From Octopus sinensis (taxonomy: Eukaryota): a DNA stretch of 64,000 nt. The position numbers and the translations under genes were made by a program. The notes below the pieces were generated by a model. That model did no database searches. It was not told the DNA's origin and saw only the letters and a program-made list of their open reading frames with translations. Shown here one piece after another: positions 947 to 56,719 of the stretch. Position 1 is the stretch's first letter. Every line of letters begins with the position of its first letter. The DNA is taken from NCBI RefSeq assembly GCF_006345805.1, contig NC_042997.1:159154001-159218000 (forward strand), read 5' to 3'.

Positions 947-1819
947 CAGATATAGTCTACATGCAAGAAATGAAGGGACATAGTCCAGGAGCCTTATCAA
1001 GGTTACTGGATTATTGAAACAAGAAAAAAAGAAAAGAGTAAAAGAAAATACCAGAAAAGTTTTCTCTAGATTTTCTCACATGAAGTTTTATTATCTTTCT
1101 TTCTCAATATATTAAACGAATTCTTTATAATAATCTAACGACTTCTGTCGTTTTGTTTTTTGGTTTTTTTTTAGAGTTATTTTGAATTTTTGATATTTTC
1201 ACTGCTTTATATTTTTAAATATTTTATTTTGATTTCATTTCAATTCATTTTGAATAAATACAATTCAGGAACATATAAATAACATATATGCTGAAATCTA
1301 GCTTATATTAAACATTTTGGGTGGGTATTTTTTTTGTTTGTTTCTTTTTCACAAAAGGTACAATAAATAAATAGGAAATAAATAAAAACAAATTTGTGTG
1401 TGAATCTGTGTGTTTATGTTTGTGTACGTGTGTACGTGTGTGTACTTCTCTATGCATCATCATCATAATCATCATCATCATCATGCATACAGAGAAATGA
1501 ACACATACACATGTGTATGTATATACATATATATATATATATATGGTAAATGAAATATACATATATATATATATATATATATGGTAAATGAAAGATGGAA
1601 GATGAAATATACAAAAATTTTTATTAATCACGACAATTGTTTCGACACATCTAGCATTGATCCCTCACAGGTGGGATACTTAACTACTGGTTCAGGAGCA
1701 TGCGGAGGTGCAGATGTGTCTCATCAGGTGCTAAATAGATACAACTCATTAAAATAACAGTTCTGAAATGTATCTTCTCATTTCATAGAAAGAAAAGCAG
1801 CAAAACAAAGGAAATATCT

Positions 1820-2147
1820 CGTTTTTGGATTTGGTTTGCAAGATTCTTTATATGAGTTCGTGTGTTGAAGCATATTCTGTTGTGTCTGGGGAGAGTCATT
1901 TTCTTTTTGTGCCTTATAATGTAACACCCTCACTGGTAAAATTTCCACTTATTTCTTATTTTCATTTTCCTAAAATTTTCATTGCGTCTTGCAACCTTTT
2001 CTAATAGTCTTGACTAAGACTATTGAAAAGGTTGCAAGACGCAACGAAAATTTTAGGAAAATAAAAATAAGAAATAAGTGGAAATTTTACCAGTGAGTGT
2101 GTTACATTATAAGGCACAAAAAGAAAATGACTCCACCCAAACACAAT
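1820..2147. mobile_element. Fold-back (palindromic) non-autonomous element with Penelope-like architecture
   Basis: Near-perfect inverted arms 1893-2011 and 2016-2133 with a 4-nt loop, weakly extending to 1880/2146. A one-sided unique extension lies at 1820-1879. Flanked by the 15-bp direct repeat ACAAAGGAAATATCT (1805-1819 and 2148-2162). Confidence 0.8.
2020..2056 (+). ncRNA. Minimal type I hammerhead ribozyme motif, U3-A8 core variant (candidate)
   Basis: CUA-UUGAAAA-G-GUUGC[AAGAC]GCAAC-GAAA-AUUU/UAG: stem I CUA/UAG, core U3...A8, 5-bp stem II, palindromic AAUU stem III, predicted cleavage after 2053. Assigned by manual motif parsing. Confidence 0.55.
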
Positions 2148-2661
2148 ACAAAGGAAATATCTTCATTCATATCTTCACACACATTATACATTTAAATACA
2201 TACGCATATCAACATGCATGCATATAAAGACACACACACATATATTTGCGTGTCTGTATGTATTAATGTGTGTATATGTGTGTGCATATGCATGTGTGTG
2301 CATACATGAGCATAAAAGATTTTCACAAGGTATTTCTTGTTAATATTTTTTAAACATGATACTTTTGACAAATTTTCTCAATTTCATGAGAAATTGGAGT
2401 AACTTCAATTTTTTTTTAACTGGAAACAAACTGAAGAATATGAATCAATAAATAAATAAGTATATAGAGAATCACCTATAAGGAAACTGAGAAATAGGAA
2501 GAATTCTTCTAATTTTATATTTACAACAGAGTGAACATTTTGGGCAGGGCTCTTTATTAAATCTACTGTAAAGTTTCAAAGCTTCCTTTTAGTCTATCAA
2601 ACCCTATAACAGACATACAGACACACACACACTAACAAACAGACACATGCAAACACACTAA

Positions 2662-2707
2662 CAAACACACACACACACACACACACATACACACACACAC
2701 ACACACA
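2662..2707. repeat. (CA)n microsatellite
   Basis: Near-perfect dinucleotide run. Confidence 0.9.
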
Positions 2708-2765
2708 AGTTTTTGAAACACTGATGTTTTAAAGTCTGCATCAAACTACCAATAGAGCGTAAAGA

Positions 2766-2807
<42 letters not shown>

Positions 2808-3250
2808 CCTTTCTACTGGAGGCACAAGGCTCAAATTTGGTGGGAGGGGACTAGTCGATTACATCGACCCCAGTGTTTTACTGGTACTTAATTCATCGAC
2901 CCCAAAAGGATGAAAGGCAAAGTTGACCTTGGTAGTATTTGAACTCAGAATTTAATGATGGGCAAAATATTGCTAATTATTTTGTCCAGCATGCTAATGA
3001 TTCTGCTACCTCACCACCTCATATAATTATAATGATTTCAAATTTTGGCACAAAATCAGCAATTTCAGGGGAACAAGTAAGTCAATTATATTGACTCCAG
3101 TGTACAACTGGTACTTATTTTATCGACCCCGAAAGGATGGAAGGCAAAGTCAACCTCAGTAGAATTTGAACTCAGAATGTAAAAGTAGACTAAATGCTAC
3201 TAGGCATTTTGTCCAGCATGTAAATGATTCTCCCAGCTCACTGCCTTGCA
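2808..3250 (-). mobile_element. Two tandem Meta-domain-type tRNA SINEs (family B) separated by AT-rich tracts
   Basis: Each contains CTGGTACTTA...ATCGACCCC(G/A)AAAGGATG(A/G)AAGGCAAAGT, the reverse complement of the TTTGCCTTTCATCC...GGGGTCGAT...TAAGTACCAG domain. Preceded by an (AAT)n run at 2771-2807. Confidence 0.75.
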
Positions 3251-8074: not shown

Positions 8075-8120
<46 letters not shown>

Positions 8121-9213
8121 TAGTTTTCTTTGTATTATTTTTCCCTTTTTTTGTTCTTGTTCTGCATGTTGAAATTTGAAGGGAGAGAAAAAATTCAGTA
8201 AAATTATAGGTCATTTCTTCATTTAGTTGCTGTTGTTGTTATATTTGTTGTATTTGTAGTTGTTGTTGTTGTTGTTGTTGAGTCTTGGTAAATTTGAACC
8301 AATCAGAGTATAGCAAATTAACCATTAGACATGACTGGTTCTGAAAACCACAAGCTCATCAACATCTGGTATTTTACCATTCTTTTCATTATTACATAAT
8401 AATAGGTTTAGTGTTTGGTTAGGAAACTAAGGACAGGTGTGAGACTGGGAAATGAAGAAGTATGTATTCACACACACATACATACACACACACACAAACA
8501 CAAATATATTCAAAGGAATTTAACTTGTTTTGAGTTTTAGTCGCAAAAATTGACTTACTCTTTTACTGATTTTAGTCATTGGACTGTGGCCATACTAGAG
8601 CATTACCTTCAAGGTTTTAATTGATCATTCAGAACCTAGTATTTACTTTATTGATGTTTACCTATGAAACCACTGAATTGCAAGATATAGAACCAACGCT
8701 CTCTCTTTCTCTCACACACACACACACTTACTCACATGTACATACATAAATGTGGGCTTCCATGTAGTTTCTATTGCCCAAATTTTAGTCACAAGGCAGT
8801 AGTCAATCTGCACATTGTATCACACAGTTGGGATTGAACCTGAGGCTAAATCTATGTTTGCTCCTTGTTCATTTGTCATAATAAATTGGACCTTAAGCTC
8901 ATACAGAATTTGAATTTGGCTTCTTGACCTATGGTTGAAAAGCTAATGAAATCATAGACAGACAATAAACATACATGAGAGAAAGGAGAAGTATAACCAA
9001 GCAGAATCTATCAGTCAGTGATTAATTCAATATAATCCACATAACACTGAATCTCAATGTTATGTACAGCTGGCTCAGTACTGCCTAGAAGATTGTAAGA
9101 TACCTTATTATCTTTAGAAGAATATTTCAAATCTTGAGCAGAACAGGTATGAAGGTGAGGAGAAGATAGATAGCTGATAATAGAATGATAATATCATCAG
9201 CAACAATCAATGG

Positions 9214-9423
9214 CTGTTTTCCATGCTGGCATGGGTTGGATGGCATGACAGGAACTGGCAAGGCCAGGGGCTGCTTAAGGTTTCAGAGTCTGTTTTGATT
9301 TGGTTTCTAAGGTTGGATACTCTTCCTAAGAAACCAAGCCAAAACAGAGTATCGAACCTAGTGCAGTCCATGGATTTGCCAGTTTTTGTCAAGCTGTTCA
9401 ACCCATGCCAGCATGGAAAACAG
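9214..9423. repeat. Fold-back of RTE-tailed SINE 3' fragments
   Basis: CTGTTTTCCATGCTGGCATGGGTTGGA... versus ...TTCAACCCATGCCAGCATGGAAAACAG, plus an inner pair CTGTTTTGATTTGGTTTCTAAGG / CCTAAGAAACCAAGCCAAAACAG. Confidence 0.75.
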
Positions 9424-9649
9424 AAATTAAATGTTGATGATGATAACACTTAGAGTTAAATATTCAGTGTGGAGCCAAGGTGAGAGATTCTATGCCAGTA
9501 GTTCTTAAGCTATTGTTGCACAAAGCCCTCTTTCAACAAATGGCATTTTACAAATGCCCCTTCAAAAGTTTCAGACATAAAAATACACAAAACAGCAGAT
9601 TATTTTAAACAAACAGAAACTAATTTTTCACAGTGATTTATTATCCATT

Positions 9650-12920: not shown

Positions 12921-14083
12921 AGAAAAAATTATTGTAAGCATTCTCACATCATCAAAGATTGCATTTTAGATTTACCTGTGTTGCATTCCTAGAAATAATA
13001 TCAGCTGATTTTCTTTCAAGTCTTTAATTAAGCTAAAAGGACTAAAAAAATTTTTCTCTGGGATTATGAAAAAAAAATCATTACAAGTGAGAAGTGGGAA
13101 AGTCCCAGCATTAATAAGCAAAATGTCTGTAAATTTAACCACTGTGCATGTGTGTATGTGTGGGCAGTCAATGTGTGTGTATGTGTGTAAGGAAAACAAT
13201 TCACAACCAAAAAGAAATTTTCAAAAACTACATTGACAGACACTGCTATTCTAAATTCAACATCACCTGAAGGTTAAACAATACATTTACATTCTTTAAC
13301 AAAGCAATCAGACTTCATTTGCTTCATATCTAATTAATTAAATGATTAATCAAAAACAAAGTTAATTGTGTGTTAATTGACAAGTTGTCATTCTACTGAA
13401 GACAAGTCTTAAAGGTAGTATAGAAAGAAATTTAGATACGAGATAATTTTTTTTTTTTTTTTGACTAATAATAAAGGTCCTTTATTTCAAGAATGAGGAG
13501 GAATAGGAAGAACACTTTGATGCTCAAACATTTCCTAAAGGAGTATTGAGGTATAAATAATACAATGTGGTTTCAATCAGCAGTAAAAACTGAGTCAAAG
13601 TTTAGACTCTCCTGAAAGTGATTCTCTTGCTTTGAAGACACTCACCAAATGTAAATACAATATAAAGACATACATGATTTTTAAAAGAAAATTTGATCTG
13701 TTTCTAAATAAACATTCAGATTGAAAATCATAAAACAAATCAAGGTGTGTAGATACAGATTAGAACTCAGTTCCATAGGTACTGTCAGAGGTCTTATTTT
13801 TCTCCTAATTCTCCTATATAATCTTAAACTAAAATTATCTCTACATAATGGTTTATCAATTCTAGGATTCATTTTGATTAACTTATGAAATAATAATATT
13901 AGATTATTCACTAATTGAAGTCATCTGATGTCTAAGGTAGAATAGTGATAAATCAGGTTTTACTTAATTACAAAATATTAATGCTAAAGCAACTAAAAAA
14001 ATGAAATATCTCAGTCATTTCCATTTATGGGATCATCTACAACCTACAGTTGGTCTACTATATATATATATATATATATATAA

Positions 14084-14334
14084 ATAGTTATCGCCAAGCT
14101 AACATGGCAGTCCAAGAAAATAGGACAAATGCTGCCGTTGATTAGCTCCAAGAGGACATCGCCTCTAGCTATCTATATGACACACAAACCTGTGTCCGTT
14201 ATAACCTTCAAACAGAGGGGGTCAGTAGCAGAAGGTTATAATGGACACAGGTTCATGTGTCACATGGCTAACTAGAGGCAATGGCTTCTTGGAGCTATTT
14301 TCCTAGACTGCCATGTTAGCTTGGTGATAACTAT
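14084..14334. mobile_element. Palindromic MITE (possible PIF/Harbinger type)
   Basis: The whole element is an inverted repeat: ATAGTTATCGCCAAGCTAACATGGCAGTC... / ...GACTGCCATGTTAGCTTGGTGATAACTAT. TAA on both flanks (14081-14083, 14335-14337). Confidence 0.8.
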
Positions 14335-14372
14335 TAATATCCAGTACCGCTGGATATAGAGAGACTTAGAAA

Positions 14373-14375
<3 letters not shown>

Positions 14376-14453
<78 letters not shown>
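14376..14453. repeat. Compound (TA)n(GA)n microsatellite
   Basis: Direct inspection. Confidence 0.95.
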
Positions 14454-14457: not shown

Positions 14458-14569
14458 ATATTATATTATGTGTATATATATATATATACATTCAGTATTC
14501 AATGGTCTGAAAAAAAGGCTACTCAGTACCATAGTGGTAATTAATAATATATTTTATTTTAGTTGAGTC

Positions 14570-14669
14570 AGTTTCTTACTACTCTGAGTTTCACCTGTAG
14601 GTGTACAGGATTTTCAGGCCAGTTAAGATCTCGTATACCAACAGGTGAAACTCAAAGTAACAAGAAACT
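14570..14669. other. 100-nt hairpin (pre-miRNA-like or tiny fold-back element)
   Basis: About 45-bp stem with few mismatches and G-U pairs, closing a 10-nt loop at 14615-14624. Confidence 0.6.
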
Positions 14670-15178
14670 AGCTGAATGAAAGTAAAATATATATAAAGAA
14701 ATTCACTTTAATCATCTGTTTTTCCACTTAATGCCATCGACTGTAAAATGAAAATCTTCATATTTTATTCATTAAGAAAAGATTAAATTCTGAGTTTTGT
14801 AATAGTTATGGACATTGATCTTCATTTGTAAATGAAGCCATAAATATTTAGTTAAAACCAAGATGGTTAAACAATTCACTTATCATTTAATGGTATGAAA
14901 TTTGTCTTTCTCTTCTGCATCTTTGAGGCTAGACTAGTCTTAGGGATAATTTTGCATTTTACATTGTATTTGAATTGATAATGTGATTAATATTACAAGA
15001 TTAATATTAATTTCATCAACACTAGGAGCCAGTTATTGGTTGAATTCAAACTTAGAAGCAAGGGTGTTGAAAATACTGTAACCAACACACTTAATTTCAC
15101 ACCAATGTTTAAATTGTTTATACCATACTTCATAATTTTATTACTGAAACTGCCCAAGAGAAATTTTGATATATATAA

Positions 15179-18576: not shown

Positions 18577-20261
18577 GATGTACTGTTCCATGATAGAAAG
18601 ATCAACAAAAAACGTACTCCATCTAGTGAGAGATAAATATTATTTATTTAAAAGAGATAATAAGTGCTACTAATAGTTTCATATGTTGAGAAATATCTTA
18701 AACATATTCATCAGGCACAAGCCACATATAATGAACTGATATATATATATATATATAATGATAGTCATATTTGTGGCCAATTTTAAAGAACTACTTTACA
18801 GAACCCTTTATTTCTAATTCTCAGAAATTCCTATATTCACATTCTGCTTAATTCAAATAGAGCAGTAGTATCTGGGTTTTTTTTTTATTTGTAAACTATG
18901 TTCTGCTGTATTATAGTTTCAGTCATGTCACACTAATATGCTATTACGATTGACATTTTTCTACTCGTAACAAATGTAGTACGTAGGTGGAGTATGACAA
19001 ATGCAATGTAAGAAACAAAAAGAAATATTAAAATAATTTAATCATTTAGTGCTAACTCTTACTTGAAATCAAAATTAGAAAATATAAAAAAATCACATCA
19101 CAATCGTTTTTGTCAAGAAAGTCTCTGCGTAACATTGATAACATTAATTTATTCAGATTTTCAAAATTGTTTCTAGGGTTCACAAACAACAATCCCAGAT
19201 TCCTAGTCTTAGTTGTTTAAATGAGTGGAGGAATGAAGGGAAGTTTGGTAAAGAAACAAAGTAATAATGATAGAGCATATTTAGAAAAAAATTTTTTAAA
19301 TATAACGATATTACATAGTCATTAGAACAGATACATAATTTGTAATACTCAAGTCTGATTTCAAAAGACAATGTAATATTTCTAAATAGGAATTAAAATC
19401 ATGTAGTTATTGTTGCTTAGTGTCACGTCAGACTTGATTGACCAAACTATAACCAAGAGTGTGTCTGCTATGACCAACTATCTTTGTTTTCAGTGCATGT
19501 AGGACTACATTATTCACTGCGTCCTTTTCTTGATGTAGGTGGAATGATTAGATTTGAGAAAGATTTGACTGCTTTTTCTAGCAAACTAAGAAACCAAGAA
19601 AGGGCTCCCTTTGGTGGCTCATAAAACCAAGTAGTAACTATGACCAATTACAGTGTGCGTAGCAAAAGTCATAATATTAAGTCAATGTTTCAAACACGCC
19701 AAATGCAGTAGCAATAAAATCAGAAAATAACATATTCGTTCTTGATATTTTAGGTTTACTTTGCAAGGGAGGTAACTATCAACAAATAACATGAAATCAG
19801 ATATTTTATTTTTTGCTTTTTATCTCTTTTTTCTTTTTAGTAGATTTTATCGTTTATACACAGGAATACATCAACATATTAATAACATCGGCGCAAAGCC
19901 ATACATTTAAGGAGAGAGAGAGAGGGAGAGAGAGAGAGAGAGAACATATACGGTCAATTGGCACTTTATTTTAATAGCCCCTTCCACTCCTCTGGAGAAG
20001 GGTGAAAGGCAAATGACCATGGCAGAAGTTGAACTCAGCATATAAATAGATGTTGCTAGCTAAAACTGTAAGGCATATTTTTGTCCAGCTCTCTACTAAT
20101 TCTGCGATATACCGTCCTTCAACGGTATATCGTTAACACAATATAAAACATCGAGAGTTTTATGAATGCCAAGATTTCAATAAGAAATAACCACATAACA
20201 AAAACATATTTAAACTACTTCCTTAATGTGTCTAAATCTAATATGTACAGTTAGTTAACTA

Positions 20262-21495: not shown

Positions 21496-21818
21496 TCTTT
21501 TACGTGCTTGTCATGAGACTGTGGCCAAGCTGGGGCACTGCCTTGAAGTATTTTGGTCAAGCAAATTGACCCCAGTATTTAATTTTTTAAACCTGGAACA
21601 TATTCTATCCAAACCAGTTACAGGACAAACACACACACATACGTAGATATATAAGACAGGCTTCTTTCAATTTCCATCTACCAAATCCACTCACAAGGCT
21701 TTGGCTGGCCTGAGGCTATAGTAGTAGAAGACACTTGCCTAAGGTGCCACACAGTGGGGCTGAACCTGGAACCATGTAGTTGGGAAGCAAATGTCTTACC
21801 ACACAGCCACACCTGTGC
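21496..21818 (-). mobile_element. Family A CORE-type SINE
   Basis: AGACACTTGCCTAAGGTGCCACACAGTGGGGCTGAACCTGGAACCATG...CCACACAGCCAC. Confidence 0.8.
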
Positions 21819-24800
21819 ATAGTGTTTATATTAATTTTCCACTACATATGCTCTGTATCTAAATCTATTTAGATAAAACTAATAAAACAGTCTAGCAGAA
21901 CAAGGTCAATGCTGTTGTCTTGATTATTTGTATTTTTTGCTTTGTTTTTTCTTTTTTTTTTTACGGTTTAGAAAGAAATAGAGAGGATTTGAGAAATATA
22001 AGAAAAACTTTGAATGAGATAAAAGAAAAAAAAGCATCACCAAAGATCTATATTATATATTAGATTGTTATACATTACACTATATTTTATCGGATTATTA
22101 TACAGTATTATATTAGCTTACAGTTCTCCAATGTGTGACTAAAGGAACTTAGTGAATTTATCACAGATTTCAACTTGTAAAATATTAATAAATAAGTTAT
22201 AAATAACCTCAAAGAAATAATTATACTTTCTGACATAGACACAAAGCTTTAAAATCTTTTTTTTTTTTACTTTTCTTTTCTTTTTTACTTTTCTATCTTT
22301 CTTTTCTTTTGGTCTTTTGGAAAAGAAAACTGGGAAATTGTAATGTTCATGTGTTTTTTTTTGGTTTTCTGAGAGTATTAGTGTTAGTGACATATGTGAA
22401 GAGAAAAATTTGTTCTGACAGTCAGATGGTATCAGATCTCAGCCTTGGGTTAGCTGAGGGAGGAGCTTACCTCTTGCTAAACAGCACTCACTGCTCTATG
22501 AAAAAAGCAGCAGCAGCAGTAGTAGTAGTACTAGTAGTAGTAGTAGTTGTGAGATCAAGGTTTCATTTTCATTTTTCTTTTGTTTTTTTTTTTTGTTTTC
22601 TTTTTTCGAAAAATTATGTTACAAAGTTATAATCTCTTTGTGTAAAATGTTAAAATATTGTCTAAATATATGGTGTTGCAAAATAACAAGAGAGAAAAAT
22701 AAAAAAGAAAAAAACAACAAAAAAAAATCATTTGATGGAAAATATTTCCTCGATTACCACCATCATCATTATCAATATCATTCAATAAAAATCAGTTTTT
22801 ATTTATTTATTTTTTAATCTCTGCACATTGATACAAAGATGGAACGGCTTTCTATAGAAGAATCTATCCTTTCATCAAAATCAATGGCATTTCACATCAG
22901 CAGACTGAGTAAACTGACCACATCCGTAGTGATGATGATGATGATGGTATTAGTGGTGGTGGTGGTGATGAAGATGATGATGATGACGATGATGATTATG
23001 GCTCACAGAATGGAATTGTTTGACTTCCATATGAGTTAATGTTGTTTACATAGAAGTCAAGTTAGACAGACGCTTTATATACACAAGCTGAAGATTAGAA
23101 CGTAGCAGAAATATATCATTTTGTAGATCGATATTTTACATGGAAGAAATATGTGTACTTGTACATGATAGTATGTGTGTGTGTGTAAGACTATTGTAGT
23201 ATATGTGAGCACTTGTGTGTGAGTGTTTGTATTTGGACAAGCTGCGGATTAATGTCTCATGCTTGATGCACACCAAGTGTTGTTATGTGTATTTGTGAGT
23301 CTAATCTTGAGACTACTTGTATCAGTATCTATCTACCTACCTACCTACATATATACATACATATATATACATACATACATATATATGAACAAATATCCTT
23401 CATTACCCAGTTGTATATTATCAATGAGTTTCTCAGATATCAACAAGTCACTACGGCGTTCAATTGAACAAAATACTTTTGTAGATCATTGATCACACAA
23501 CTTCATTTCAGGACAAAATGTGCCACTTGAAGCCCGCTGCTACAGCTCAAAACACACAGCATTGCAAAAATATATTTGCCACCAAAAAAAGCTTGTATCT
23601 AGATTCTAATTTTAGCTGGAGTTTGTTTTTATTTTATTTTTTTTTATTTTAATTTATATACAGATGCTTCTATTGATATTTTAAAATAGATTGAGTTATA
23701 TGTAAATAACTATTTACAGAAAATACTGTTTTTTTTTTATAAATCAAGAACTGATAAGATGATATCACTGTCAGCCTTTTAGGAAGAAAACATTTTCAGT
23801 TTGTGTCCAAACTTATTATTATCATTATTATTATCATTATTAATTATTAATTATTATTATTATTATTTATAGATAGCTGCTCCATAAACAAATGTATATA
23901 TGTTTTAAAACTATAAAGTAGACCTATAGAACAACGCTATATGGGTTCAGTCAGGGTCAGCTTTAGGATGATTGGACAAATCAATGCCTATAAAGGCCTA
24001 CACTTACTAGGTTTTATGAAATGCACCTTTCAACGGATCATTCAACACAATTTCTCCTTCACTTCTATACAGTTTTGCATATGCAAAATAGGAATAAAAT
24101 TTAGCATGGATCCTCTTGGTAGCTTTCATATTAACCTAGATTTCCAATCTAAGAACCTCAATTGGGTTAGTGCTCTAAAGAAGAGCCAGCAAAATATTTT
24201 CCAATTAGATCCTACAGTTCTTTGAGCTGCCTCTGGCTTTAGACATTTAAATATAATATATATATATATACATATATATAATCACAAAGCAGAGAAACAT
24301 CTGATCTAAAAGTCATTACATCTTAAAACAATATTTTATATAATACGGTTAATTATTTTATTAAGTCGCAGAAAGTCATCTTTAAAAAATGACATAGCAT
24401 CAACAGCATTTTACCAAACATCTTTCATTTCATTTGCCTTGTTATTTGTGATTTTTTCTTCTTTTTTTTTGTTTTGTTTTGTTATTTTGCACAGCATGTG
24501 GTCATCATTGAAAGCAAGGCCACAAGGGCCGACAATCAGCACTTGGTTGAAAAAAAAAAAGAAAATGAAATAAAGTAGAAAGCAACATTTTTCTACCCTT
24601 CCACCCTTAAAAAAAAAAAGTGGGGACAGCAAGAGTAAAATTCTTACACCTCCTGAATAAATTAATCACTATAAAAACTAAAGAAACCGTTGCTTCTAGA
24701 TCAAGCATGGGCAACCTTTATTCAAGAAGCTGGCTGCAAGGCTCATCATCAAGAAGACTGCACTGCTACAATATTTGCAGTAATTTTTCATTTAGGTATG

Positions 24801-32800: not shown

Positions 32801-34448
32801 ATCAAATTGAGTCTAAATACACTGTATATGCAAATCTTGTATACAAATCTATATTTTTGATATATAGCCATCGTCATTATTATCATTTTACATCAACTTT
32901 CTATGCTGGCATGGGTTGGATGAGTTGACATGGTCTGACTCCATTCTTATTAACAGTTACTGCCCTTCTGGATGGGTCAGACGACTATGTTTTGCTCACA
33001 CATTCCATTTTTTGACATGATTTCACGTGTTGGACACCCTACCTAACTCTAACCACTTTCCAAAATTGTATAGGGTGCATTTTATTGTAGCATGAGCATT
33101 TGAGATGTTGCCATGTGTTAAAGAAAACTAAAGACTCTGTTCAACCCCTCTGTTGTCCCTTCTCATTTATCAACCACTTACTTTGTAAAGAGTACTCAGT
33201 GCATTTAACATGGCACCAGCATTAATGAGGTTAGCTTTGTACTTTACAAAATGAAACCATAGTCACTCTTTTACACTGTCTCCTTTCATTCAAGGCAATA
33301 TCTTTGACTTCAAATTTATAAATAAACTGCAGTTTTAGAAGCAAGGGAAAGGTACTGGGAATATGAAAAAGGTGGTGAGAACATTCTTTGATGCACACCT
33401 TCATGATCAACTGGGCCAGGATAACAGTACTAAATCTCTTTCATATCACAATATACTGCCTAAAAAAACAGGATTGATATATTGGATAATGTGGCTTTAG
33501 ATACTCTGAGAAAAAAAAGATAGGATGGCCAAAAATGGAACATCTTTGATCATAGTTCTGCTTGATAAGGGTTGACTTAAGCTAAGCAATAATAAGAACC
33601 ACAATTGGTTCAGTGCTTATTTCCTGTATCTAAGAATTGATAGGATAAATATTATTTGTGATAAGGATACCAGTTACAACTGGTGCCTTCCCCAGTTGAA
33701 TCACAAATCACCTCTGAAAGATATTAAATCATTACAGCAGTGAGTTGTTCCAACCTTGTAGTTACTACAGAGATCTAGTTGGATTAGTCTATTATATAGA
33801 GTTTAGTTTCTCAAACCCAGAGATAATTCACTGGTGTTGAAGAGGAACAGTGAATTGCTTAGTTGACTGTTTTGCATCCCATCAACTAACTCTTCAATTC
33901 TTTGTGTCACAAATATAATAAACATTCGTGACAATTTAGCAGAAGTGACCGATTCAGCATACAAATCCACATACGTCTAGACATAGGGGTATTGGACAGT
34001 TTGATATCTCAACCAAACAATACTGTGAGTAGAATACTCAACTTTTAAATTGATTGTTTTGCAGCTAGCTAACTGAGCTTTTAACTAAATAAATAAACTT
34101 TAAGTAAATAAATTTTGAAAGATTAAAAATGTTAAGAAATTCTTGTGTATTTAAAAATTCTGCTGTTTGTATGGTTTAGCTACCCTATCTTTCGAACCTA
34201 CATTTGATTAGCCCTCTCACACACACCTATGATTAATGGGGTTCCAGCTATAATTGTCTTATCCTTTATATTTTTAGCCATTGTGTATCCAGGACTGCAA
34301 TAGTCTATGTCCATTTTTTTAACCTGGTAGCGTGTAACTGGAAGAAGACTTTGTTACTATTTTTAGTATCTTGAGCAACCAGAGAACAGATGATTCATCA
34401 GTTCATGTTAAAAATGTTAACTGAAAAGGTAAAGGTTTTCTACTATAC

Positions 34449-34850
34449 TCTTTTACTTGTTTCAGTCATTTGACTGTGGCCATGCTGGAGCACCGCCTTT
34501 TTAGTTGAGCAAATCAACCCCAGGACTTATTCTTTGTAAGCCTAGTACTTACTGTATTTGTCTCTTTTGCCGAACCGCTAAGTTACGGGGAGGTAAACAC
34601 ACCAGCATCGGTTGTCAAGCGATGCTGGGTGGGAACAAACACTGACACAAAAACACACACACACACACACACATATACATATATACAACGGGCTTCTTTC
34701 AGTTTCTGTCTACCAAATCCACTCACAAGGCTTTGGTCGGCCCGAGGTTATAGTAGAAGATGCTTGCCCAAGGTGCCACACAATGGGACTGAACCCAGAA
34801 CCATGTGGTTCGTAAGCAAGCTACTTACCACAGAGCCACTCCTACGCCTA
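34449..34850 (-). mobile_element. Family A CORE-type SINE, well preserved
   Basis: Full head-to-tail match to the 151-524 and 40226-40648 copies, with an internal (CA)/(TA) tract. Confidence 0.9.
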
Positions 34851-34987
34851 TGTTAAAATATTTTCTGGCTCATATATCAAAATCATCTAACAATAAATAT
34901 TAATGAAAGATTTTCACCTTTCATTGTTTCAAAAAAACATTACCAAAAAATGGACAGAATAGAAACAGAATCAAACCTTGATAGTGG

Positions 34988-36139: not shown

Positions 36140-36325
36140 AGAAACATGAACAAAGAGAAAACACAACAACGCAAGGACGTGGAACAAGTATAGTGTTATT
36201 GGATGCTCAGGAAAGGAAAGAAAGAAGGAGGATTTAATGTTTCAAGCAGAGCACTTCGTCAGAAACATAGGAAAAGGAAAGGTCCAAGGAAGGGAAGACG
36301 GAGAAAGAAAATCGCCAATGATAAA
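36140..36325 (-). mobile_element. Second family P2 copy with a decayed hammerhead (36231-36266)
   Basis: GUUU-CUGACGA-A-GUGC[UCU]GCUU-GAAA-CAUU/AAAU; stem II has one mismatch. Confidence 0.6.
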
Positions 36326-36342
36326 CATGCGGTTATATATTG

Positions 36343-36373: not shown

Positions 36374-36419
36374 TAGATATATATGGCTTCCATGCTGGTG
36401 GCACATAAAGAGCCACATT

Positions 36420-37160
36420 TGAGCATGGTCTATGCCAGTTCCACCTGACTAGACCCCATACCAGTGGCACGTAAAAAGCACCCACAACACTCTCAGAGTG
36501 GTTGGTGTTAGGAAGGGCATCCAGCTGTAGAAACCTTGCTAGATCAGACTGGAGCCTGGCACAGCCTCCTGGTTTGCCAGTCCTCAGTCAAACCCTCCAC
36601 CCCATCCCAGCATGGAAAGTACATGTTAAATGAAGATGAGAGATAGTAAGAGACAGAAATCATCATCATCATCATTTAACGTCTGCTTTCCATGCTGGCA
36701 TTAGTTGGATGATTTGACTGAGGACTGCCAAACCAGAAGGCTGTACCAGGCTCCAATCTGATCTGGCAAGGTTTCTACAGCTAGATGCCCTTCCTAACAT
36801 CAACCACTCTGAGAGTGAAGTGGGTGCTTTTTACGTGCCACTGGCATGAGGGCCAGTCAGGCAGTACTGGCATCAACCACACTCAAATGTTGCTTTTTAT
36901 GAGCCACTCACATGAGAGCCAGTCAGGCAGAACTGGAAATGACTACGCTCAAATGGTGCTTTTTACATGCCATTGGCACAGTAGCCAGTCTAGCGACAGT
37001 GGGAATGATCACGCCTGAATGATGCTTTTTACATGCCAGGACCAGTAAAGCAGCACTGGCATCGACCATACTCGAATGGTGCTTTTACATGCTACTAGCA
37101 TGGGTGCCAGTCAAGTATTGGGATTGGCTATGACTATGACTGCACTTGCCTCAACAGTTT
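36420..37160. mobile_element. Tail-to-tail pair of RTE-tailed SINEs (plus 36420-36640, minus 36660-37160)
   Basis: ...CATCCCAGCATGGAAAGTACATGTTAAATGA faces TCATCATTTAACGTCTGCTTTCCATGCTGGC... Confidence 0.75.
36825..37110. repeat. Internal tandem array, about 60-bp unit, 5 copies
   Basis: Recurrent GGTGCTTTTTAC(G/A)TGCC...CCAGTCAGGCAG...TGGCATC(A/G)ACCAC units. Confidence 0.75.
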
Positions 37161-37174: not shown

Positions 37175-37800
37175 GAAGGGTACTTTTAAATGGGCCGGTT
37201 ATGCTGCACTGGCACAGTCCACGGTTACGGTCTCACTTGGCTTGCCAGGTCTTTTCCAGCGTAGCATATCTCCAAAGGTCACAGTCACTCATCGTTTCCG
37301 TGAGACCCAACATTTGGAGGTTGTGCCGCACCACCTCATCCCAGGTTTTCCTGGGTCTACCTCTTTCACAGGTTCTCTCTACTGCTGGGATGTGACACTT
37401 TTCCACACAGCTGTCCTCATCTATACACAACACATGACCATACCAGCACAGTCATCTCTCTTGTGCACCACATCAGATGCTTCTTACGTCCAACTTTTCT
37501 CTCAGGGCACTTACACTCTGTCATGTATGCACACTGTTATTACACAACCACAAAGTATACTGGCTTCATTTCTTGCAAGCTTACATATGTCTTCAGCAGT
37601 CACAACCCATGTTTCACTGCCGTGTAGCATGGCTGTTCGCACACATGCATCATACAGTCTACCTTTTACTCTGAGCAAGAGGCCCTTTGTCACCAGCAGA
37701 GCTAGGTGCTCTATGAACTTTGGCAAGACAATTTTTATTCTAGCAGTTACACTCTCAGAGCATCCACCCCAGCTACTAAACTTGGTTACCCAGGTAACAG
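37175..37800 (-). mobile_element. RTE-clade LINE 3' fragment (RT thumb/C-terminus), pseudogenised
   Basis: LLVTKGLLLRVKGRLYDACVRTAMLHGSETW and ERGRPRKTWDEVVRHNLQMLGLTE in shifted frames. Confidence 0.85.
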
Positions 37801-37819: not shown

Positions 37820-38490
37820 TATCATCAAGAGAGATGATTGCACTGGTATGGTCATGTCATGCATATGGATGTGGACAGCTGTGTGAAGAAGTGCCAATCT
37901 CTACCAGTGGAAGGAAGCTGTGGAAGAAGGAGACCCAGGAAAACATGGGGTAAAGTGGTGAAGCATGATCTTCAACTGTTGGGCCTCACAGAGGCAATGA
38001 CTAATGACCAAGACCTTTGACGATATGCTGTGCTTGAGAAAACCCATCAAGCCAAGTAAAATCATAGTTATGGCCATTGTTGGTGTCACATAACTGGCAC
38101 ATAAAAAGTACCGTTTGAGTGTTGGGTTTCATGGAGGCAATGTGGCTGATGCCAGTGGTGTATAACTAGTAACCATGCTGGTGGAACATAAAAAAACACC
38201 TTTTGAGTGCTGGGCCTCACAGAGGCAATGACAAGTGACCAAAACCTTTGGCAATATGCTGTTCTTGAGAAAGAAGATCTATCAAGCCAAGTGAAATCAC
38301 CAGCAACTAGCACCTATGCCAGTGGTATGTAAAAGCACCCATTACAATCTTGGAGTGGTTGGCATTAGAAAAGGCATCCAGCCATAGAAGCCATACCAAA
38401 TTCGACTGGAGTGTGGTGCAGCCCCTCAGGATACCAACCTTTGTCGAACCATCCAACCCAAGCTAGCATGGACAAATGGACGCCAAAATA
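37820..38490 (+). mobile_element. RTE 3' fragment plus RTE-tailed SINE, inverted relative to 37175-37800
   Basis: HWYGHVMHMDVDSCVKKCQSLPVEGSCGRRRPRKTW followed by the family D tail. Confidence 0.8.
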
Positions 38491-39910: not shown

Positions 39911-40225
39911 TCAAATGCAATTACCACATTGTTGATGGGAACCAGATAGAACCCCATTGAATGTACCTGTAATTCAAAGGTCCAACCTGGTTACACAGTG
40001 TCAAGTTAATTTTAGTTAAGGATTAGATTAAGGGTAAATATTGCAGTGGAATACTCAGAGTGTCTGCTCACAAACTTATTAAGTAGGAAATTGAGTTGAC
40101 TGAACCAGATGTGTTTACATGAGTCTTGACTGGAGAACTGATCATAGATTGAAATGTACACATACATAAACAGGCCTGTACACTCAGAACAAATGTTTGT
40201 GCATAAAAATGCATTTAATACCTTA

Positions 40226-40648
40226 TAGGCATAGGAGTTGCTGTGTGGTAAGTAGCTAGCTTACCAGCCACATGGCTCTGGGTTCAGTCTCACTGCATGG
40301 CACCTTGGGCAAGTGTTTTCTACTATAGCCTCGAGCCAACCAAAGCCTTGTGAGTGGATTTGGTAGACAGAAACTGAAAGAAGACCGTCGTATATATGTA
40401 TGTATATATATATATATGTGTGTGTGTGTATGTGTGTGTGTGTGTCTGTGTTTGTCCCCCCAAACATGGCTTAACAACCGATGGTGGTGTGTGTATGTCA
40501 CCATAACTTAGCAGTTTGGCAAAAGAGACTGATAAAATAAGTACTTGGGTTACAAAGAATAAGTCCTGTGGTCAATTTGCTCCACTAAAAGCGGTGCTCC
40601 AGCATGGCCACAGTTAAATGACTGAAACAAGTATAAGAGTATAAGAGA
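40226..40648 (+). mobile_element. Family A CORE-type SINE
   Basis: Head GAGTTGCTGTGTGGTAAGTAGC...GGGTTCAGTCTC, CORE ACCTTGGGCAAGTGTTTT, tail AAATGACTGAAACAAGT. Confidence 0.9.
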
Positions 40649-44395: not shown

Positions 44396-44549
44396 GTTGG
44401 TGGTAGAAATAGTAGTATGCATGCTATTCCTGAAAACATGATAGAATAGTCACAACTGAAAGGACTCTGATCATGTGTCTTCACAATCTGGGCAGACCTA
44501 GACTAAACAAAAACTAGAGAAGACACCGTATTATTATTAGTATTATTAT

Positions 44550-44885
44550 TGAATGAGAGAGCAGTGCATGCCATCAAAGTGACACTGGGGTAAAATATAC
44601 GAAGCCCAGTATATCCATCATGACTACACATCTGATAAGGGTACACAAGACACATGCATCACAACCATATGTGCATGACATGGTGATCTCATATCAAGGT
44701 AAACCGCACATGACCTTGCAGGTGAGGCCCAGTTAGAATTTTCTTCTGGTCGAGTAGCCCATCCCGCTCAAAAGGTCCCTGAATAAGGGTTGTTTAAAGA
44801 TGTTGAACGAAACACCCATGTTTCCAAAGGTGAATTATCCAAACCTCCAAGAATTCCTTTCAACACACGGTTATGATGATACCCC
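44550..44885 (+). mobile_element. Interspersed repeat family E (SINE-like)
   Basis: Homologous to an inverted copy at about 57600-57930 (CATGACCTTGCAGGTG...GGTCCCTGAATAAGGGTTGTTTAAAGA). Confidence 0.65.
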
Positions 44886-44890
44886 ACTTA

Positions 44891-44924: not shown

Positions 44925-44927
44925 TTT

Positions 44928-46100: not shown

Positions 46101-46164
46101 TACAACATTCCTCCAATAAAACATAATCTTCTAAACAAATCTCTTCCACCACTGCTTCATCATC

Positions 46165-46620: not shown

Positions 46621-47238
46621 TCAAAGGTTAGTCTATCAATGTTACTTTATCTTTTTAGTGAAACATATTTTATACTGTCAGCAACTTTCTAATTTTTCTA
46701 TCAATATCCTGTAGTTCTTCAGTGTTTCAATTGATCATGCCTATGCTGCACTGGATGACTGAGATAGCACATGAATTGATAGCTGTGATACTATACCTAC
46801 TGTTTAAGAGAGATTCAAATATTTACTAGGCCTTTCTTTTTATAATTCATTTTACACATTTTGTCTTTTATGATATCAGTTTCCCAAAACTCCTAAATAC
46901 CGGCACCTAGTTTCTTTATAAATTGTATTTTATATTCTCAACTGTACAAAGCCCAATTCCTCCTATTTCAGACCATTTGCTCCTCTTCATAGTAAGGCTG
47001 CCACACTTGTGTCAAATTCCATTCTTATTTCCTCACTGAATATTCATATACAGTTTGCAAAAATATCAAATTGGTTTTTATATTCTAGCTAATTAATTTC
47101 AAGGTATACATAAATAATAAGTGGTCAATGGCTTGTTCATCTTTTCTTAATTAATATCTTGCTTTAACTTTCTGAAGATATAGGTCATAGGGATAAAGCT
47201 GATGACAAATAGTAAAGGTGATAGACTACCTCCTTCAA

Positions 47239-47759
47239 GTACATTATTTACATTTGACAGATATTTGTCCTCATCTTGTTTGTTGTTAAAACAATGTTTC
47301 AGCTGATATATCCTCTAGCCTTCATCAGGTGTCTTGGGGAAATTTCGAACCAGGGTTCTCATTCCTAAGGTATTTTTCAATGTTGTAGTTGTTGTTGTTC
47401 TTATTATTATTATTAATATTCAGGTCACTGCCTGGAATTGAACTCGGAGTCTTGGGGTTAGTAGCCCACGCTCTTGACCACTATGCCATATGCTTGTGGG
47501 TATATGGCGTAGTGGTTAAGAGCACAAGCTACTAACACCAAGATTCCAAGTTCAATTCCAGGCAGTGACCTGAATAATAATAATAATAATGATAATAATA
47601 ATAATAATATCAAAAAATACCTTAGGAATGAGAAACCAGGTTCGAAATTTCCCCAAGACACCTGATGAAGGCTAGAGGGTATATCAGCAAGATGAGGACA
47701 AATATCTGTCAAATGTAAATAATGTACATAATTCCTCATCTCTAAAATATAGAACTGTA
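47239..47759. mobile_element. Head-to-head palindromic tRNA-headed, hammerhead-bearing element (family P1)
   Basis: Inverted arms 47239-47493 and 47499-47727; unique tail 47728-47759; TSD-like TACCTCCTTCAAGT / TACTGCCTTCAAGT (47227-47240, 47761-47774). Each arm has an A box (TGGCGTAGTGG), a B box (GTTCAATTCC), an (AAT)n spacer, then CCTGATGAAGGCT. Confidence 0.88.
47288..47333 (-). ncRNA. Minimal hammerhead motif, partly decayed
   Basis: GACAC-CUGAUGA-A-GGCU[AGAGGAUAUAUC]AGCU-GAAA-CAUU/GUUUU. Confidence 0.55.
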
Positions 47760-48384
47760 TTACTGCCTTCAAGTATTCCTTTCTTTATCTCTAATTCCTT
47801 CAACAAATAGTATTTTAGTTCTTTTATCAATGGAGTTTCCTGCTCATTTAATTTTAGTTTACAAGGCTGTCTACTCCACAGACACTTTTACTATTACTAT
47901 AATAATAAAATATTACACAGTATTTAACAAAGACTCTTTGAATTATAAGTAGAATCCAGCTACAGATTTCCACACAGTTTCTGCCAACACAATTTCACAC
48001 ATGAGGCTTAAGTTAACCCAAGGCTTATGATAGAAAACACTTGCTCAGTATTGCATGCAGTGAGATCAAAGTCAGGTTCTCATGATTGCAAAGCAAAATT
48101 TGTTAGTTATGCTCACACCTGCTGGCATTAAGATGACATTAAGTGGCACTAAGGGAAAGTGTCTTCTACTATAGCCCCTGGTAAAACCAAAGCTTTGTAG
48201 TGGATTTTGTAGGCAGAAACTGAAAGAGACCCATTGCATGCACATGTGTGTACATGTGTGTTCCTCTCTTGGCATCATTTGATAGTTACAAAAGGGAGTC
48301 ATCATCATCATCATGCAAGTATTGTCCTTCATTTCCAAACTTTCAGGAAAGAACATGTCTGGTCATAAGGAAATATTAAAATAA

Positions 48385-52430: not shown

Positions 52431-52464
<34 letters not shown>

Positions 52465-52465
<1 letters not shown>

Positions 52466-53960: not shown

Positions 53961-54981
53961 CGGATGGTATAACCATCACTTGCAATTGTGTATGACTTAC
54001 TGGTACAAATAGATTTAGGTGTCCATGTAGTCATGAGCAAACAGACATTCTCTCAACTCTCTGACCTTTGATCTAGCTGTTATATCATGGAACATCCCTA
54101 ATGTAACAACTAGAGAGAATGGGAGTTGCACCAGCCCGGAGCTAGTATTTTCTTTATCAACTCAGAAAGATAGAAAAACAAAGATGATCCAAGGAGAATT
54201 TAAACTCAGAATGTCATCCAATTTACAGAGTGTACTGGGTTCTTTTTTTTATTTTTGTGTTTGTATGTTGCCATGTAAAAAGCACCCAGCACACTCTATA
54301 AAGTGAATGATGTCATGAAGGGCATTCTGCCATAGAATCCTTGCTAAAGTTGACAGTTGAGCTTTGCACAACCTTCTGACTAGCCAACCCCAGTCAAATA
54401 TTCAGACCACATGGCTACCAATGAACTGCCTAATATTTGTGTGCAGGTGTGTGTTTGTGCCTATGCTTGATGGCAGTCTGTCAAACAACTAGCTGCAATA
54501 AACAGTAACAATGTTTCAGATATATTATTCTCTGCCTAACTGAATTCCATACTGTTTACTCAAAAACAGAACAATTAATCACATAGACTGAAGTATTACA
54601 GTCCAGATACTGAACTTCCTATGCATTCAGGTTCCGTACACTTGCTGTTGTTTTTATTATTCCCCCCAAAGCATTTATGATCTGAGTGGTATTTAGTTGC
54701 TATTTCTAACCAGTCAAATGGTTGTGTAGAAGATCCTAATCCAGTCAGATTTGAAGTCAGAGTGCAACGGGACAAAGGTAAACCTTGCAAAGATTTTAGT
54801 TCACAATCAGCCAGTGTCTTCAGAACCAGATTCATGCTTCATTTTATTAACCCTGATGAAATTAAATTTAAACTAAATTCTAACATTATTGAGACAGTAA
54901 CTAGACTTAATCTGCTTCACAGTTTAACACCATTACCTGGTCCTTGGGTGTCTTTAACAGTGTTCACTCTGTTTCAAATAT

Positions 54982-55041
54982 TCAGACCAGGTTTCTAGTT
55001 TGAGGATAAGTTCCTCCCCTTTCTTTAACAGTGTTAGAGGC
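54982..55041 (-). CDS. Candidate short terminal exon (ASNTVKERGGTYPQTRNLV*)
   Basis: Strong acceptor TTTTTCTTTTTCTTTACAAG|G with a phase 0 frame ending in TGA. A frame this short can arise by chance. Confidence 0.25.
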   Translation of the reverse strand, partial: ASNTVKERGGTYPQTRNLV

Positions 55042-55139
55042 CTTGTAAAGAAAAAGAAAAAACCATGGGGTCAAGATTACTGCACTTCCTTCCCTCATTA
55101 AGCAATGAAATGATGATGATGACGATGACGACGACCATC

Positions 55140-55400
55140 AGATCAGACATCAGAAACCGGAAATTGTTGTGGTGAACAAAAAAGCAAAAAAATTGCATGA
55201 TAATAGACATAGCATGTCCCAATGACAACAAGATCAAAGAGAAAGAAGAAAAACTGAACAACTATGACCATTTGAAGTGGGAAATATAAAGGTTGTGGGC
55301 AATGAAGTGAATGGACATGATACCAGTAGTAATTGATATGCTTGGAAGTATCAGTGCTCAACTACCAACACAACTCAGAAAGATTGGTATGACAGAAGAA
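55140..55400 (+). mobile_element. Dong/R4-clade LINE restriction-like endonuclease fragment, copy 1
   Basis: HQKPEIVVVNKKQKNCMIIDIACPNDNKIKEKEEKLNNYDHLKWEI*RLW...IPVVIDMLG matches the PD...D...K pattern. Confidence 0.8.
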
Positions 55401-55503
55401 CAAGCCTTAAGGATGGACTATGTGAAATGCAGAATTGACAACACAACTGAGAGCAACAAACCCAGAATGTGTGGTGAGAGGGGTGAAACAGTATAGCATA
55501 TGC

Positions 55504-55854
55504 ATTATGTACATTATTTACATTCGATGGATATTTGTCCTCATCTTGTTTGTTATTGACACAACATTTCGGCTGATATACCTTCCAGCCTTCTTCAGGT
55601 GTTTTGAGGAAATTTCAAACCTGGGTTCTCATTCCTAAGGTATTTTTCAATGTTGTTGTTATTATTATTATTATTATTGTTTAGGTCACTGCTTGGAATC
55701 AAACTTGGAATCATGGGCTTAGCAGCCTGCGCTCTTAACCACTACACCATATGCCCATTGTGTTAACAACAAACAAGATGAAGACAAATATCCATCGAAT
55801 GTAATTAATGTAAATAATGTACATAATTCCTCATCTCTTAAATATAGAACTGTA
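55504..55854. mobile_element. Second family P1 element: full inverted arm plus a forward fragment starting at the ribozyme cleavage site
   Basis: Minus arm 55504-55756 (tRNA head to tail); forward piece 55759-55854 begins TGTGTTAACAAC and ends with the same tail as 47728-47759; TSD GTATAGCATAT (55491-55501, 55855-55865). Confidence 0.88.
55558..55603 (-). ncRNA. Minimal type I hammerhead ribozyme motif, near intact
   Basis: AACAC-CUGAAGA-A-GGCUG[GAAGGUAUAU]CAGCC-GAAA-UGUU/GUGUC. Confidence 0.7.
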
Positions 55855-56719
55855 GTATAGCATATTGTTAGTGAATGCCCGAAATTGGCACAGCTTGAAT
55901 AGAAAAGATGACATGACAATGTGGCAAGAATGATCCGTTGGGAAAATCAAGGCCTACAAAAAGCATAAATGATATGACCAAACCCCAGAAGGAGTTACTG
56001 AGAATGAAGATTGCAAAATACTGTGGGATGTAATGATTTGGTGTTACCATCAGATGAGACATCATAAAACTTATATTGTTGTGGTGAACAAGAAAGAAAT
56101 CTTGCATGGTAACCAACATAGCATGTCCCAATGACAACACGATCGAAGAAAAATAAGAAAAATTGAGCATCAGTGAATAACTATGATGATTTGAAGTGAA
56201 ACAAATGCAGGTTGTGAGAAATGAAGAGTGGAGATGATACCAATAGTAATTGGAATGCTTGGAAGAATTAAAGCTCAACTATCAACATAGCTGAAAAAGA
56301 TTGGTACAGAAGTAAACATAGAACACCTACAAAAGTCATTGTTGCTTAGAACTGCAAGAGTTGTCTGCAGGGTTCTTGAAGCATGATCAGTAATCAAGTG
56401 TCACCTTAGTCAGCTGGCTGTAGACAGCTGACACTTTCCATCATACCAGCAAAATAAGCTGAAAGTTTTCATCAAATAATAATAATAACTGAAAAGGAAT
56501 TGGAATTGACATGAGGGCAGAACAAACGGAGCCCCACACACATTTACCTTCTAGAAATTGTTACAGGTGGCACAACCTGAGTGTGTGTCTGCACATCAAA
56601 AGTCATGACATACCTAAGTCACTGCAAAGAGGAGGCTGATAGTAGATTCACTGCTTGACCATTGGAATACATCCCTTCCACAATAAAATAAATAAAAGAT
56701 GCTCCAACTTAATCAAGCA

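Follow-up and report, generated by a model that had tools for sequence, protein, structure and literature searches.

Penelope-type hammerhead motifs in three families of short repeats in a 64-kb window of the Octopus sinensis genome

Three families of short repeats, here called F1, F2 and F3, each contain a motif that parses as a minimal type I hammerhead ribozyme. They are located in a 64,000-nt stretch of the Octopus sinensis genome (positions 159,154,001 to 159,218,000 of contig NC_042997.1, assembly GCF_006345805.1), referred to below as the window, in whose numbering all coordinates are given. The families are probably dead copies of short non-coding retroelements, inserted by the reverse transcriptase (RT)/GIY-YIG endonuclease of Penelope-like elements (PLEs) encoded elsewhere. 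The window has an AT content of 66%, is rich in microsatellites and, according to self-BLAST, is dense in short interspersed repeats. A first-pass annotation of the sequence had delimited the three families and described their anatomy, and both were upheld by BLAST searches and alignments. The families are also mutually dissimilar, as the annotation had stated: BLAST found no sequence shared between them, and local alignments of their 3' modules gave z < 1.1.

Hammerhead motifs

The strict descriptor used to search for hammerheads consists of a helix I of at least 4 bp, the sequence CUGANGA, zero or one extra nucleotide, a helix II of 3–7 bp, GAA, A-NN-U, H, and the 3' strand of helix I. When applied to both strands of the window (128 kb), it matched twice, in F2 copy a (F2a) and F3 copy b (F3b), compared with no match in 200 dinucleotide-preserving shuffles. 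A relaxed descriptor, with the core Y-U-G-A-N-R-A (Y3/R8) and a helix I of as little as 3 bp, added the motif of F1; this gave three matches, where the shuffles averaged 0.035. The reversed window, in which hairpins and low-complexity runs are preserved, contained no match to the strict descriptor and none to a much looser one. The type I hammerhead parse that had been proposed for each family is thus borne out.

The conserved core, C3-U-G-A-N-G8-A9...G12-A-A14...U16.1-H17, is canonical in F2a and F3b, and is of the U3/A8 type in F1. The motif of F1 (2020–2056, plus strand) reads CUA-UUGAAAA-g-GUUGC aagac GCAAC-GAA-AAUU-U-UAG, that of F2a (29761–29795, minus strand) GUUU-CUGACGA-a-GAGC ucc GCUC-GAA-ACAU-A-AAAC, and that of F3b (55558–55603, minus strand) AACAC-CUGAAGA-a-GGCUGG[8]UCAGCC-GAA-AUGU-U-GUGUC. 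Across the three families helix I comprises 3–5 bp and helix II 4–6 bp, and the open end is in helix I. In each family one unpaired nucleotide (g in F1, a in F2 and F3) separates A9 from position 10.1 and is followed by the pair G10.1-C11.1. The extra purine after A9 and the short stem I reported in the first-pass annotation are therefore present in all three families. The lowest-energy folds calculated by ViennaRNA for the motifs of F1 (right arm) and F3b consist of exactly stems I and II.

Helix III has a palindromic centre in two of the three families. In F1 it is AAUU, with the centre AU. In F3 it is ACAU in copy a (F3a) and AUGU in F3b, and both positions of a CpG are changed between the copies, in the directions of CpG decay. 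Because this pattern corresponds to a two-way decay of one CpG, parsimony points to the palindrome ACGU as the ancestral helix III of F3. Both copies of F2 have ACAU, which is not palindromic. The earlier claim that stem III is, or reverts to, a palindrome in every family thus holds for F1, is supported for F3 through the reconstructed ancestor, and is unsupported for F2.

The remaining copies contain decayed versions of the motifs. The left arm of F1 (1970–2007, minus strand) has CUA-UUAGAAAA-g-GUUGC[5]GCAAU-GAA-AAUU-U-UAG, with a one-nucleotide insertion in the core and C11.1 changed to U. The second copy of F2 (F2b; 36232–36266, minus strand) has GUUU-CUGACGA-a-GUGC[3]GCUU-GAA-ACAU-U-AAAU, in which stem II is GUGC/GCUU. 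The hammerhead in the left arm of F3a (47288–47333, minus strand), GACAC-CUGAUGA-a-GGCUAG[8]UCAGCU-GAA-ACAU-U-GUUUU, is slightly decayed, and only a remnant is present in the right arm (47657–47688, plus strand), where a 22-nt deletion extends from GAAA through helix III and across the 3' strand of stem I.

Lünse, Weinberg and Breaker reportedly also treated the minimal type I hammerheads found in metazoan PLEs in 2017. The motifs in the window resemble these ribozymes in the CUGANGA...GAAA...UH core, the unpaired nucleotide after A9, the G10.1-C11.1 pair, the short helix I, the reduction of helix III to A-NN-U with a palindromic centre, the U3-A8 core, and the occurrence of copies singly or as opposite-strand pairs. 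According to Cervera & de la Peña 2014 (PMC4209133), metazoan PLE minimal hammerheads have an extra nucleotide after A9, a conserved G10.1-C11.1 pair, a loop-less helix III that is palindromic at positions 15.2–16.2, and a helix I of 4–5 bp, or 2 bp in Drosophila virilis. The same study describes a U3-A8 covariant core with ~1,300 matches in Schistosoma mansoni, assigned to PLEs. It also reports that the motifs are mostly solitary or form opposite-strand pairs 100–700 bp apart, and regards solitary genomic minimal hammerheads as "probably related to truncated PLEs". The paired motifs within the palindromic insertions described below are on opposite strands, in agreement with the published spacing. 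The first-pass annotation had presented the extra purine, the loop-less palindromic stem III, and the short stem I as special quirks of these families. Their novelty was overstated, since all of them, as well as the U3-A8 core, belong to the published consensus of the PLE class (PMC4209133). The motifs differ from PLE hammerheads in that helix II has 4–6 bp here and 6–8 bp in Schistosoma and Drosophila, no PLE open reading frame (ORF) adjoins them, their catalysis is predicted only, and the hosts are cephalopods, a group not covered in the cited papers.

Insertion anatomy and its alternatives

F1 occupies a single locus, flanked by target-site duplications (TSDs) of 15 bp (ACAAAGGAAATATCT; 1805–1819 and 2148–2162, 15/15 identical). 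It is formed of two arms of ~134 nt each, arranged head to head with the junction near 2013. The left arm (~1876–2013, minus strand) is an inverted copy that is 93% identical to the right, sense arm (~2014–2147, plus strand). The right arm ends at the proximal 3' end, whereas alignment of the arms reveals a 56-nt 3' extension, or tail, on the left, antisense arm (1820–1875, minus strand).

The two F3 insertions are organized in a similar manner. F3a (47239–47759) contains two near-full-length arms that are 79% identical and joined head to head at their 5' ends. Its left arm (47239–47497, minus strand) is a full-length copy without a tail, and the right arm (47498–47729, plus strand), also full-length in the arm alignment, continues into a 30-nt tail, AATTCCTCATCTCTAAAATATAGAACTGTA (47730–47759). 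The flanking TSDs, ACTACCTCCTTCAAGTA at 47225–47241 and its counterpart at 47759–47775, match at 14 of 17 positions. In F3b, the main copy (55502–55757, minus strand) is full-length and is followed by an inverted, 5'-truncated copy of the 3'-terminal ~67 nt only (55758–55824, plus strand; 90–92% identical to the main copy). The 30-nt tail is attached to this short arm only (55825–55854, plus strand) and has one difference from the tail of F3a. The TSD of F3b, AGTATAGCATAT, is identical at 12 of 12 positions (55490–55501 and 55854–55865).

All three palindromic insertions, F1, F3a and F3b, thus include a head-to-head inverted copy and a tail on exactly one arm (56, 30 and 30 nt, respectively), as the first-pass annotation had described. 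The TSDs of 15, 17 and 12 bp replace its range of 11–15 bp with one of 12–17 bp. The predicted hammerhead cleavage site is positioned 94 nt from the 3' end in F1, 98 nt in F2; in F3 the distance is 53–59 nt to the proximal and ~88 nt to the distal end.

This architecture corresponds to that of PLEs. Their insertions are strongly 5'-truncated, have an inverted 5'-truncated copy at the 5' end and a tail of 30–40 bp, often at one end only. Naiad PLEs insert preferentially into (TA)n, and a comparable preference for microsatellites has been hypothesised for Neptune (Craig 2021, PMC8557442). The protein of an Anolis PLE cuts and extends both DNA strands in vitro; RT starts at two internal sites, 85–92 nt downstream of where the hammerhead cuts the RNA, the tail corresponds to the sequence between these sites, and hammerhead cleavage is dispensable for insertion in vitro (Frangieh 2024, PMC11167929). 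The repeats in the window share with PLEs the inverted 5'-truncated copy, the one-ended tail, the AT-rich or (TA)n target, and a hammerhead ~90 nt upstream of the RT start. Unlike full PLEs, the units here are 134–260 nt long, non-coding, and lack a tandem of pseudo-long terminal repeats (pLTRs), and the 56-nt tail of F1 is longer than the published 30–40 bp.

Long inverted arms between direct duplications are also a feature of miniature inverted-repeat transposable elements (MITEs) and foldback DNA transposons with long terminal inverted repeats, and microRNA models of Rfam score the palindromic regions as long hairpins. The TSDs of DNA transposons are 2–10 bp long and fixed for each superfamily. 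Those of the palindromic insertions are longer and variable. Furthermore, the ends of the insertions are asymmetric, with a tail on a single arm, and F3 has a Pol III-type (RNA polymerase III) 5' end. The inverted arm of F3 is ~259 nt, or full-length, in F3a and 67 nt in F3b, which indicates independent 5' truncation of cDNA; the structure of a MITE is constant between copies. The terminal-repeat and TSD pattern of a MITE, for which the insertions were checked, was not found, and a DNA-transposon origin is scarcely credible.

The Rfam microRNA matches, at 1887–2140, 36584–36722, 47421–47570 and other positions, have small E-values and are far below the gathering score (117 versus 245 bits for MIR2646). 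They were rejected as microRNAs and are artefacts of long transposon-derived inverted repeats and microsatellites.

F2 is represented by two copies in direct orientation, 6.4 kb apart and 86% identical. F2a (29667–29875, minus strand, with a possible 8-nt extension at 29659–29666) is inside a (TA)n microsatellite, whereas F2b (36142–36342, minus strand) has (TA)n on its right side only. The minus strand was taken as sense on the basis of the hammerhead and its distance to the 3' end.

Several observations weigh against a PLE-type origin of the families, and F2, the weakest of the three, contributes many of them. Neither F2 copy has an inverted copy, a tail, or a clear TSD. The (TA)n adjoins the same side of both copies, which leaves the orientation of the element unsettled, and helix III is not palindromic. 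The lowest-energy fold of F2a (ViennaRNA) is a competing 8-bp hairpin, UAUGUUUC/GAAACAUA, in which the core is sequestered. F1 is present at one locus only, and its stem I has just 3 bp. Each family has one to three copies, whose differences are as frequent in stems as elsewhere, with no covariation and no sign of constraint: among the few copies per family, the stem changes are one-sided or pair-breaking, and none forms a compensatory pair. The descriptors were composed post hoc, after the motifs had been seen. No hammerhead model of Rfam matched at the gathering threshold, or at E ≤ 10, in the window or in three focal slices of a few hundred bases. This failed test is weak counter-evidence because the Rfam models expect a hairpin in helix III, without which minimal variants occur. 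A Pfam scan of all 189 stop-free stretches of at least 60 amino acids (E ≤ 0.01 for 37–64 kb, E ≤ 0.1 for the first 37 kb) identified no protein family, RT and GIY-YIG domains and PLE ORFs included; the scan was insensitive and also missed visible RT fragments of long interspersed elements (LINEs).

The absence of an Rfam hammerhead match agrees with a reading in which the motifs are chance parses in ordinary short interspersed elements (SINEs) mobilised by LINEs, or in other hairpin-rich repeats, and in which the inversions result from twin priming or nested insertions. Repeats without a hammerhead also form inverted pairs in the window (9192–9445; 36384–36921; 37176–37463 with 37826–38115), the F2 motif overlaps a simple 8-bp hairpin, and the loose descriptor is expected to produce 0.54 chance matches per window. 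The strict descriptor, however, had no match in 200 shuffles or in the reversed window. In addition, hallmarks that the descriptor did not require accompany the motifs: the extra nucleotide and G10.1-C11.1 in three of three families, and the palindromic centre of helix III in two of three. The motifs are in the sense orientation, 53–98 nt upstream of the element 3' end, and twin priming, which inverts part of a copy, would neither place one 3' region on both arms nor produce a one-sided tail. Chance parsing is thus an unlikely explanation.

A closer alternative is that F1 and F2 are 5'-truncated ends of autonomous PLEs, in which a hammerhead is located near the junction of pLTR and ORF, and that only F3 is truly non-autonomous. 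PLE insertions are known for strong 5' truncation, most minimal hammerheads are solitary, F1 is a single locus, and the F2 copies coincide at one end and are offset by 8 nt at the opposite one. Both arms of F1, on the other hand, begin at one point, 6 nt upstream of the hammerhead, and both F2 copies begin at the same nucleotide adjoining (TA)n. Such coincidence is unexpected from repeated random truncation, yet the F1 arms could owe their symmetry to a snap-back origin. We regard truncation of autonomous PLEs as possible but doubtful. The proposal of the first-pass annotation that all three families are passengers of Penelope-type machinery is accordingly retained in part: the hammerhead hallmarks and the insertion scar speak for it, F2 lacks both the scar and the palindrome, and F1 and F2 are indistinguishable from truncated PLEs.

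Non-LTR retrozymes of animals have been suggested to travel as passengers on the machinery of PLEs (Cervera & de la Peña 2020, PMC7229834; Li, Clavereau & Pollet 2026 preprint), and F1–F3 resemble them in being non-coding and hammerhead-bearing, and in their proposed dependence on PLEs. Retrozymes are tandem hammerhead repeats whose transcripts cleave themselves into monomers and become circular, and which spread in the form of circular RNA; their units are AT-rich, 170–400 nt long, and argued to be derived from PLE pLTRs. In the window, self-BLAST revealed no direct tandem at any of the loci, and the copies are solitary or inverted. The predicted cleavage site is inside every copy, so the ends of the copies were not set by self-cleavage. 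Moreover, invertebrate retrozymes have canonical hammerheads with loop–loop contacts, not minimal ones. It is very improbable that F1–F3 are retrozymes, and PLE-mediated insertion of short non-coding units is the preferred explanation.

Two other segments of the window are related to this anatomy. An inverted repeat at 14083–14377, inside (TA)n, has arms at ~14083–14210 and ~14230–14335 and a one-sided tail of ~40 nt (14336–14377). No hammerhead motif was found in this insertion, despite its PLE-like architecture, and it may be derived from a Naiad-type PLE, a group without canonical hammerheads. The second segment (18577–18727, minus strand) is ~150 nt long, has (TA)n on both flanks, and contains a fourth hammerhead-like motif at 18664–18718, GUGC-CUGAUGA-AUAUGUU[13]AACAUAU-GAA-ACUAUUAGU-A-GCAC. 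This motif has a canonical core, a quasi-palindromic helix III, and a predicted cut 91 nt from the 3' end. The extra nucleotide is absent, and an A-U pair replaces G10.1-C11.1. Since it was found by the loose descriptor, for which 0.54 matches per window are expected by chance, it is suggestive only. Together, the two segments point to frequent PLE-type insertion in this genome, with the hammerhead-bearing families as a subset of its products.

The tRNA-headed family F3 and its genomic surroundings

F3 differs from the other families in that a tRNA-like head precedes its hammerhead. The full-length element, as seen in the main copy of F3b, consists of the head (with the A box TGGTGTAGTGG), (AAT)n, a spacer, the hammerhead, and the 3' end. 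In the left arm of F3a the head spans ~47420–47497. The A box, TGGCGTAGTGG, is at nucleotides ~10–20 and the B box, GTTCAATTC, at nucleotides ~55–63 of the element, with the spacing found in tRNA. The 5' end is fixed, since three copies begin within 3 nt of one another. The homology to tRNA was recognized weakly by Rfam (14.1 bits, E = 6.8, 47431–47488), and ARAGORN reported nothing in the window at default settings and one F3 arm at the 80% threshold. Unlike those of canonical SINEs, the 3' end of F3 is neither LINE-derived nor a poly(A) or simple-repeat tail, and is formed of unique sequence with the hammerhead and a PLE-type tail. The antisense strand contains a stop-free stretch of 99 amino acids, the translation of which had no protein match. 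A metagenome scan with the invariant pattern of the F3 3' end returned 59 loci, all but one of which are chance matches of 19–25 nt; the exception, a match of 35 nt with 89% identity, was likewise judged to be due to chance.

Judged from its sequence, F3 is a SINE with a Pol III promoter and a 3' module of PLE type. Given its tRNA-type head, it is the only family shown to be a non-autonomous element in its own right. No published description of a tRNA-headed SINE with a PLE module was found in a literature search that had little coverage of subscription journals. Tentatively, F3 could be the first described SINE in which a tRNA-type Pol III promoter is joined to a PLE 3' module instead of a LINE-derived one.

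The nearest precedent is Sm-alpha of Schistosoma, a short non-autonomous retroelement that likewise has a Pol III promoter at its head and contains a type I hammerhead. Sm-alpha and Sj-alpha are SINE-like elements (Ferbeyre 1998; Laha 2000; reviewed in PMC6765202), and Sm-alpha is largely tandem, with a canonical, fast-cleaving hammerhead. F3 differs in its minimal PLE-type motif, its dispersed copies, the PLE scar of inverted copy plus tail, and the (AAT)n between head and module. Three SINEs described from octopus, OK, OR1 and OR2 (Ohshima & Okada 1994), are tRNA-derived as well, and the texts searched do not link them to a hammerhead or a PLE. F3 could be one of these elements. Short non-autonomous Penelope elements are known from butterflies.

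Other repeats in the window provide the context of the three families. A LINE C-terminal fragment at ~37.2–38.1 kb has its best named relative in a protein of Octopus bimaculoides (78% identity over the matched part), in agreement with the earlier suggestion of a cephalopod-like genome. A search of contig records for DNA encoding an ORF of the window or the O. bimaculoides protein returned nothing. Penelope families have been recently active in octopus, and the host is a plausible source of the enzymes. The LINE C-terminal region forms two inverted copies (37176–37463 and 37826–38115) that are 73% identical, and a separate fragment with LINE RT motifs is located at 56987–57262 on the minus strand; neither was detected by Pfam. 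An abundant SINE-like family without a hammerhead (...CCCATGCCAGCATGGAAA...GTTAAATGATGATGAT) includes a head-to-head pair at 9192–9445, a tail-to-tail pair at 36384–36921, and further copies near 38.3, 42.6, 46.2, 50.5, 53.7 and 54.3 kb, which may be single events or nested insertions. Another SINE-like family of ~400 nt, unrelated to F3, is found at 150–525, 34444–34852, 40225–40643 and 21625–21839; its copies are 77–85% identical and, by the look of the six-frame translation, it is putatively tRNA-derived. A 346-nt inverted duplicate (44544–44888 and 57596–57941) is 82% identical over copies 13 kb apart, and a hairpin-like palindrome of 146 nt at 14547–14692, with arms of 68 nt that are 79% complementary, adjoins (GA)n and (TA)n.

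Proposed mechanism and implications

We infer a mechanism of insertion by analogy with the Anolis PLE. Each unit would contain a PLE-derived 3' module composed of the minimal hammerhead, 53–98 nt of family-specific sequence, a proximal RT start, a stretch of 30–56 nt, and a distal start. The PLE protein would bind this module, cut both strands of an AT-rich or (TA)n target 12–17 bp apart, and prime cDNA synthesis on both target strands from the internal RNA sites. Synthesis would begin at the distal start on one strand and at the proximal start on its counterpart, and the two cDNAs would be joined head to head. The expected outcome is an inverted copy, full-length or 5'-truncated, with a tail on a single arm and a TSD. 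In F3, the tRNA-derived Pol III promoter head would precede the module, and the partner of this SINE would be a PLE, not a LINE. The predicted RT starts of F3 are ...AATGTAC(AT) and ...GAACTGTA, on both DNA strands.

Least certain in this mechanism is what the ribozyme does. The retained copies span both sides of the predicted cleavage site, and the templates were therefore uncleaved RNA. As helix III is palindromic and has no loop, two ribozymes would have to pair for cleavage to occur, and in the layout of F3 the predicted cut would part the promoter head from the 3' module. Uncleaved templates and this separation of head and module fit both the dispensability of cleavage in vitro and a motif that cleaves only when paired. 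Most likely, the hammerhead is carried along as part of the module recognized by the protein.

The three families belong to a known kind, PLE-type hammerhead elements, of which only the tRNA-headed F3 is possibly a new variant. With them, PLE-type minimal hammerheads and the associated insertion scar are recorded from an octopus-like genome. Octopus genomes have abundant, recently active Penelope elements, and the repeat annotation of octopus consulted for comparison does not mention ribozymes. In O. vulgaris, 30 Penelope families have been active recently and 893 SINE families are unclassified, and the annotation of the giant squid includes 235 Rfam hammerhead matches. The tail on a single arm in three of three palindromic insertions is an independent fit to the cutting and extension of two strands from two RNA sites observed in vitro. 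The presence of the cleavage site inside every copy argues that the ribozyme is not needed for making the transposition template. For annotation, head-to-head copies are a hazard, as they are easily mistaken for MITEs or microRNA hairpins.

The tRNA-headed F3 suggests that PLEs, like LINEs, can have SINE partners. If this reading of F3 is right, Pol III SINEs of octopus are moved by Penelope-like elements. SINEs with a PLE partner could in that case explain some of the sequence in the very large "unclassified SINE" portion of octopus genomes, and many of the long head-to-head inverted repeats there, the transcripts of which would fold into double-stranded RNA.

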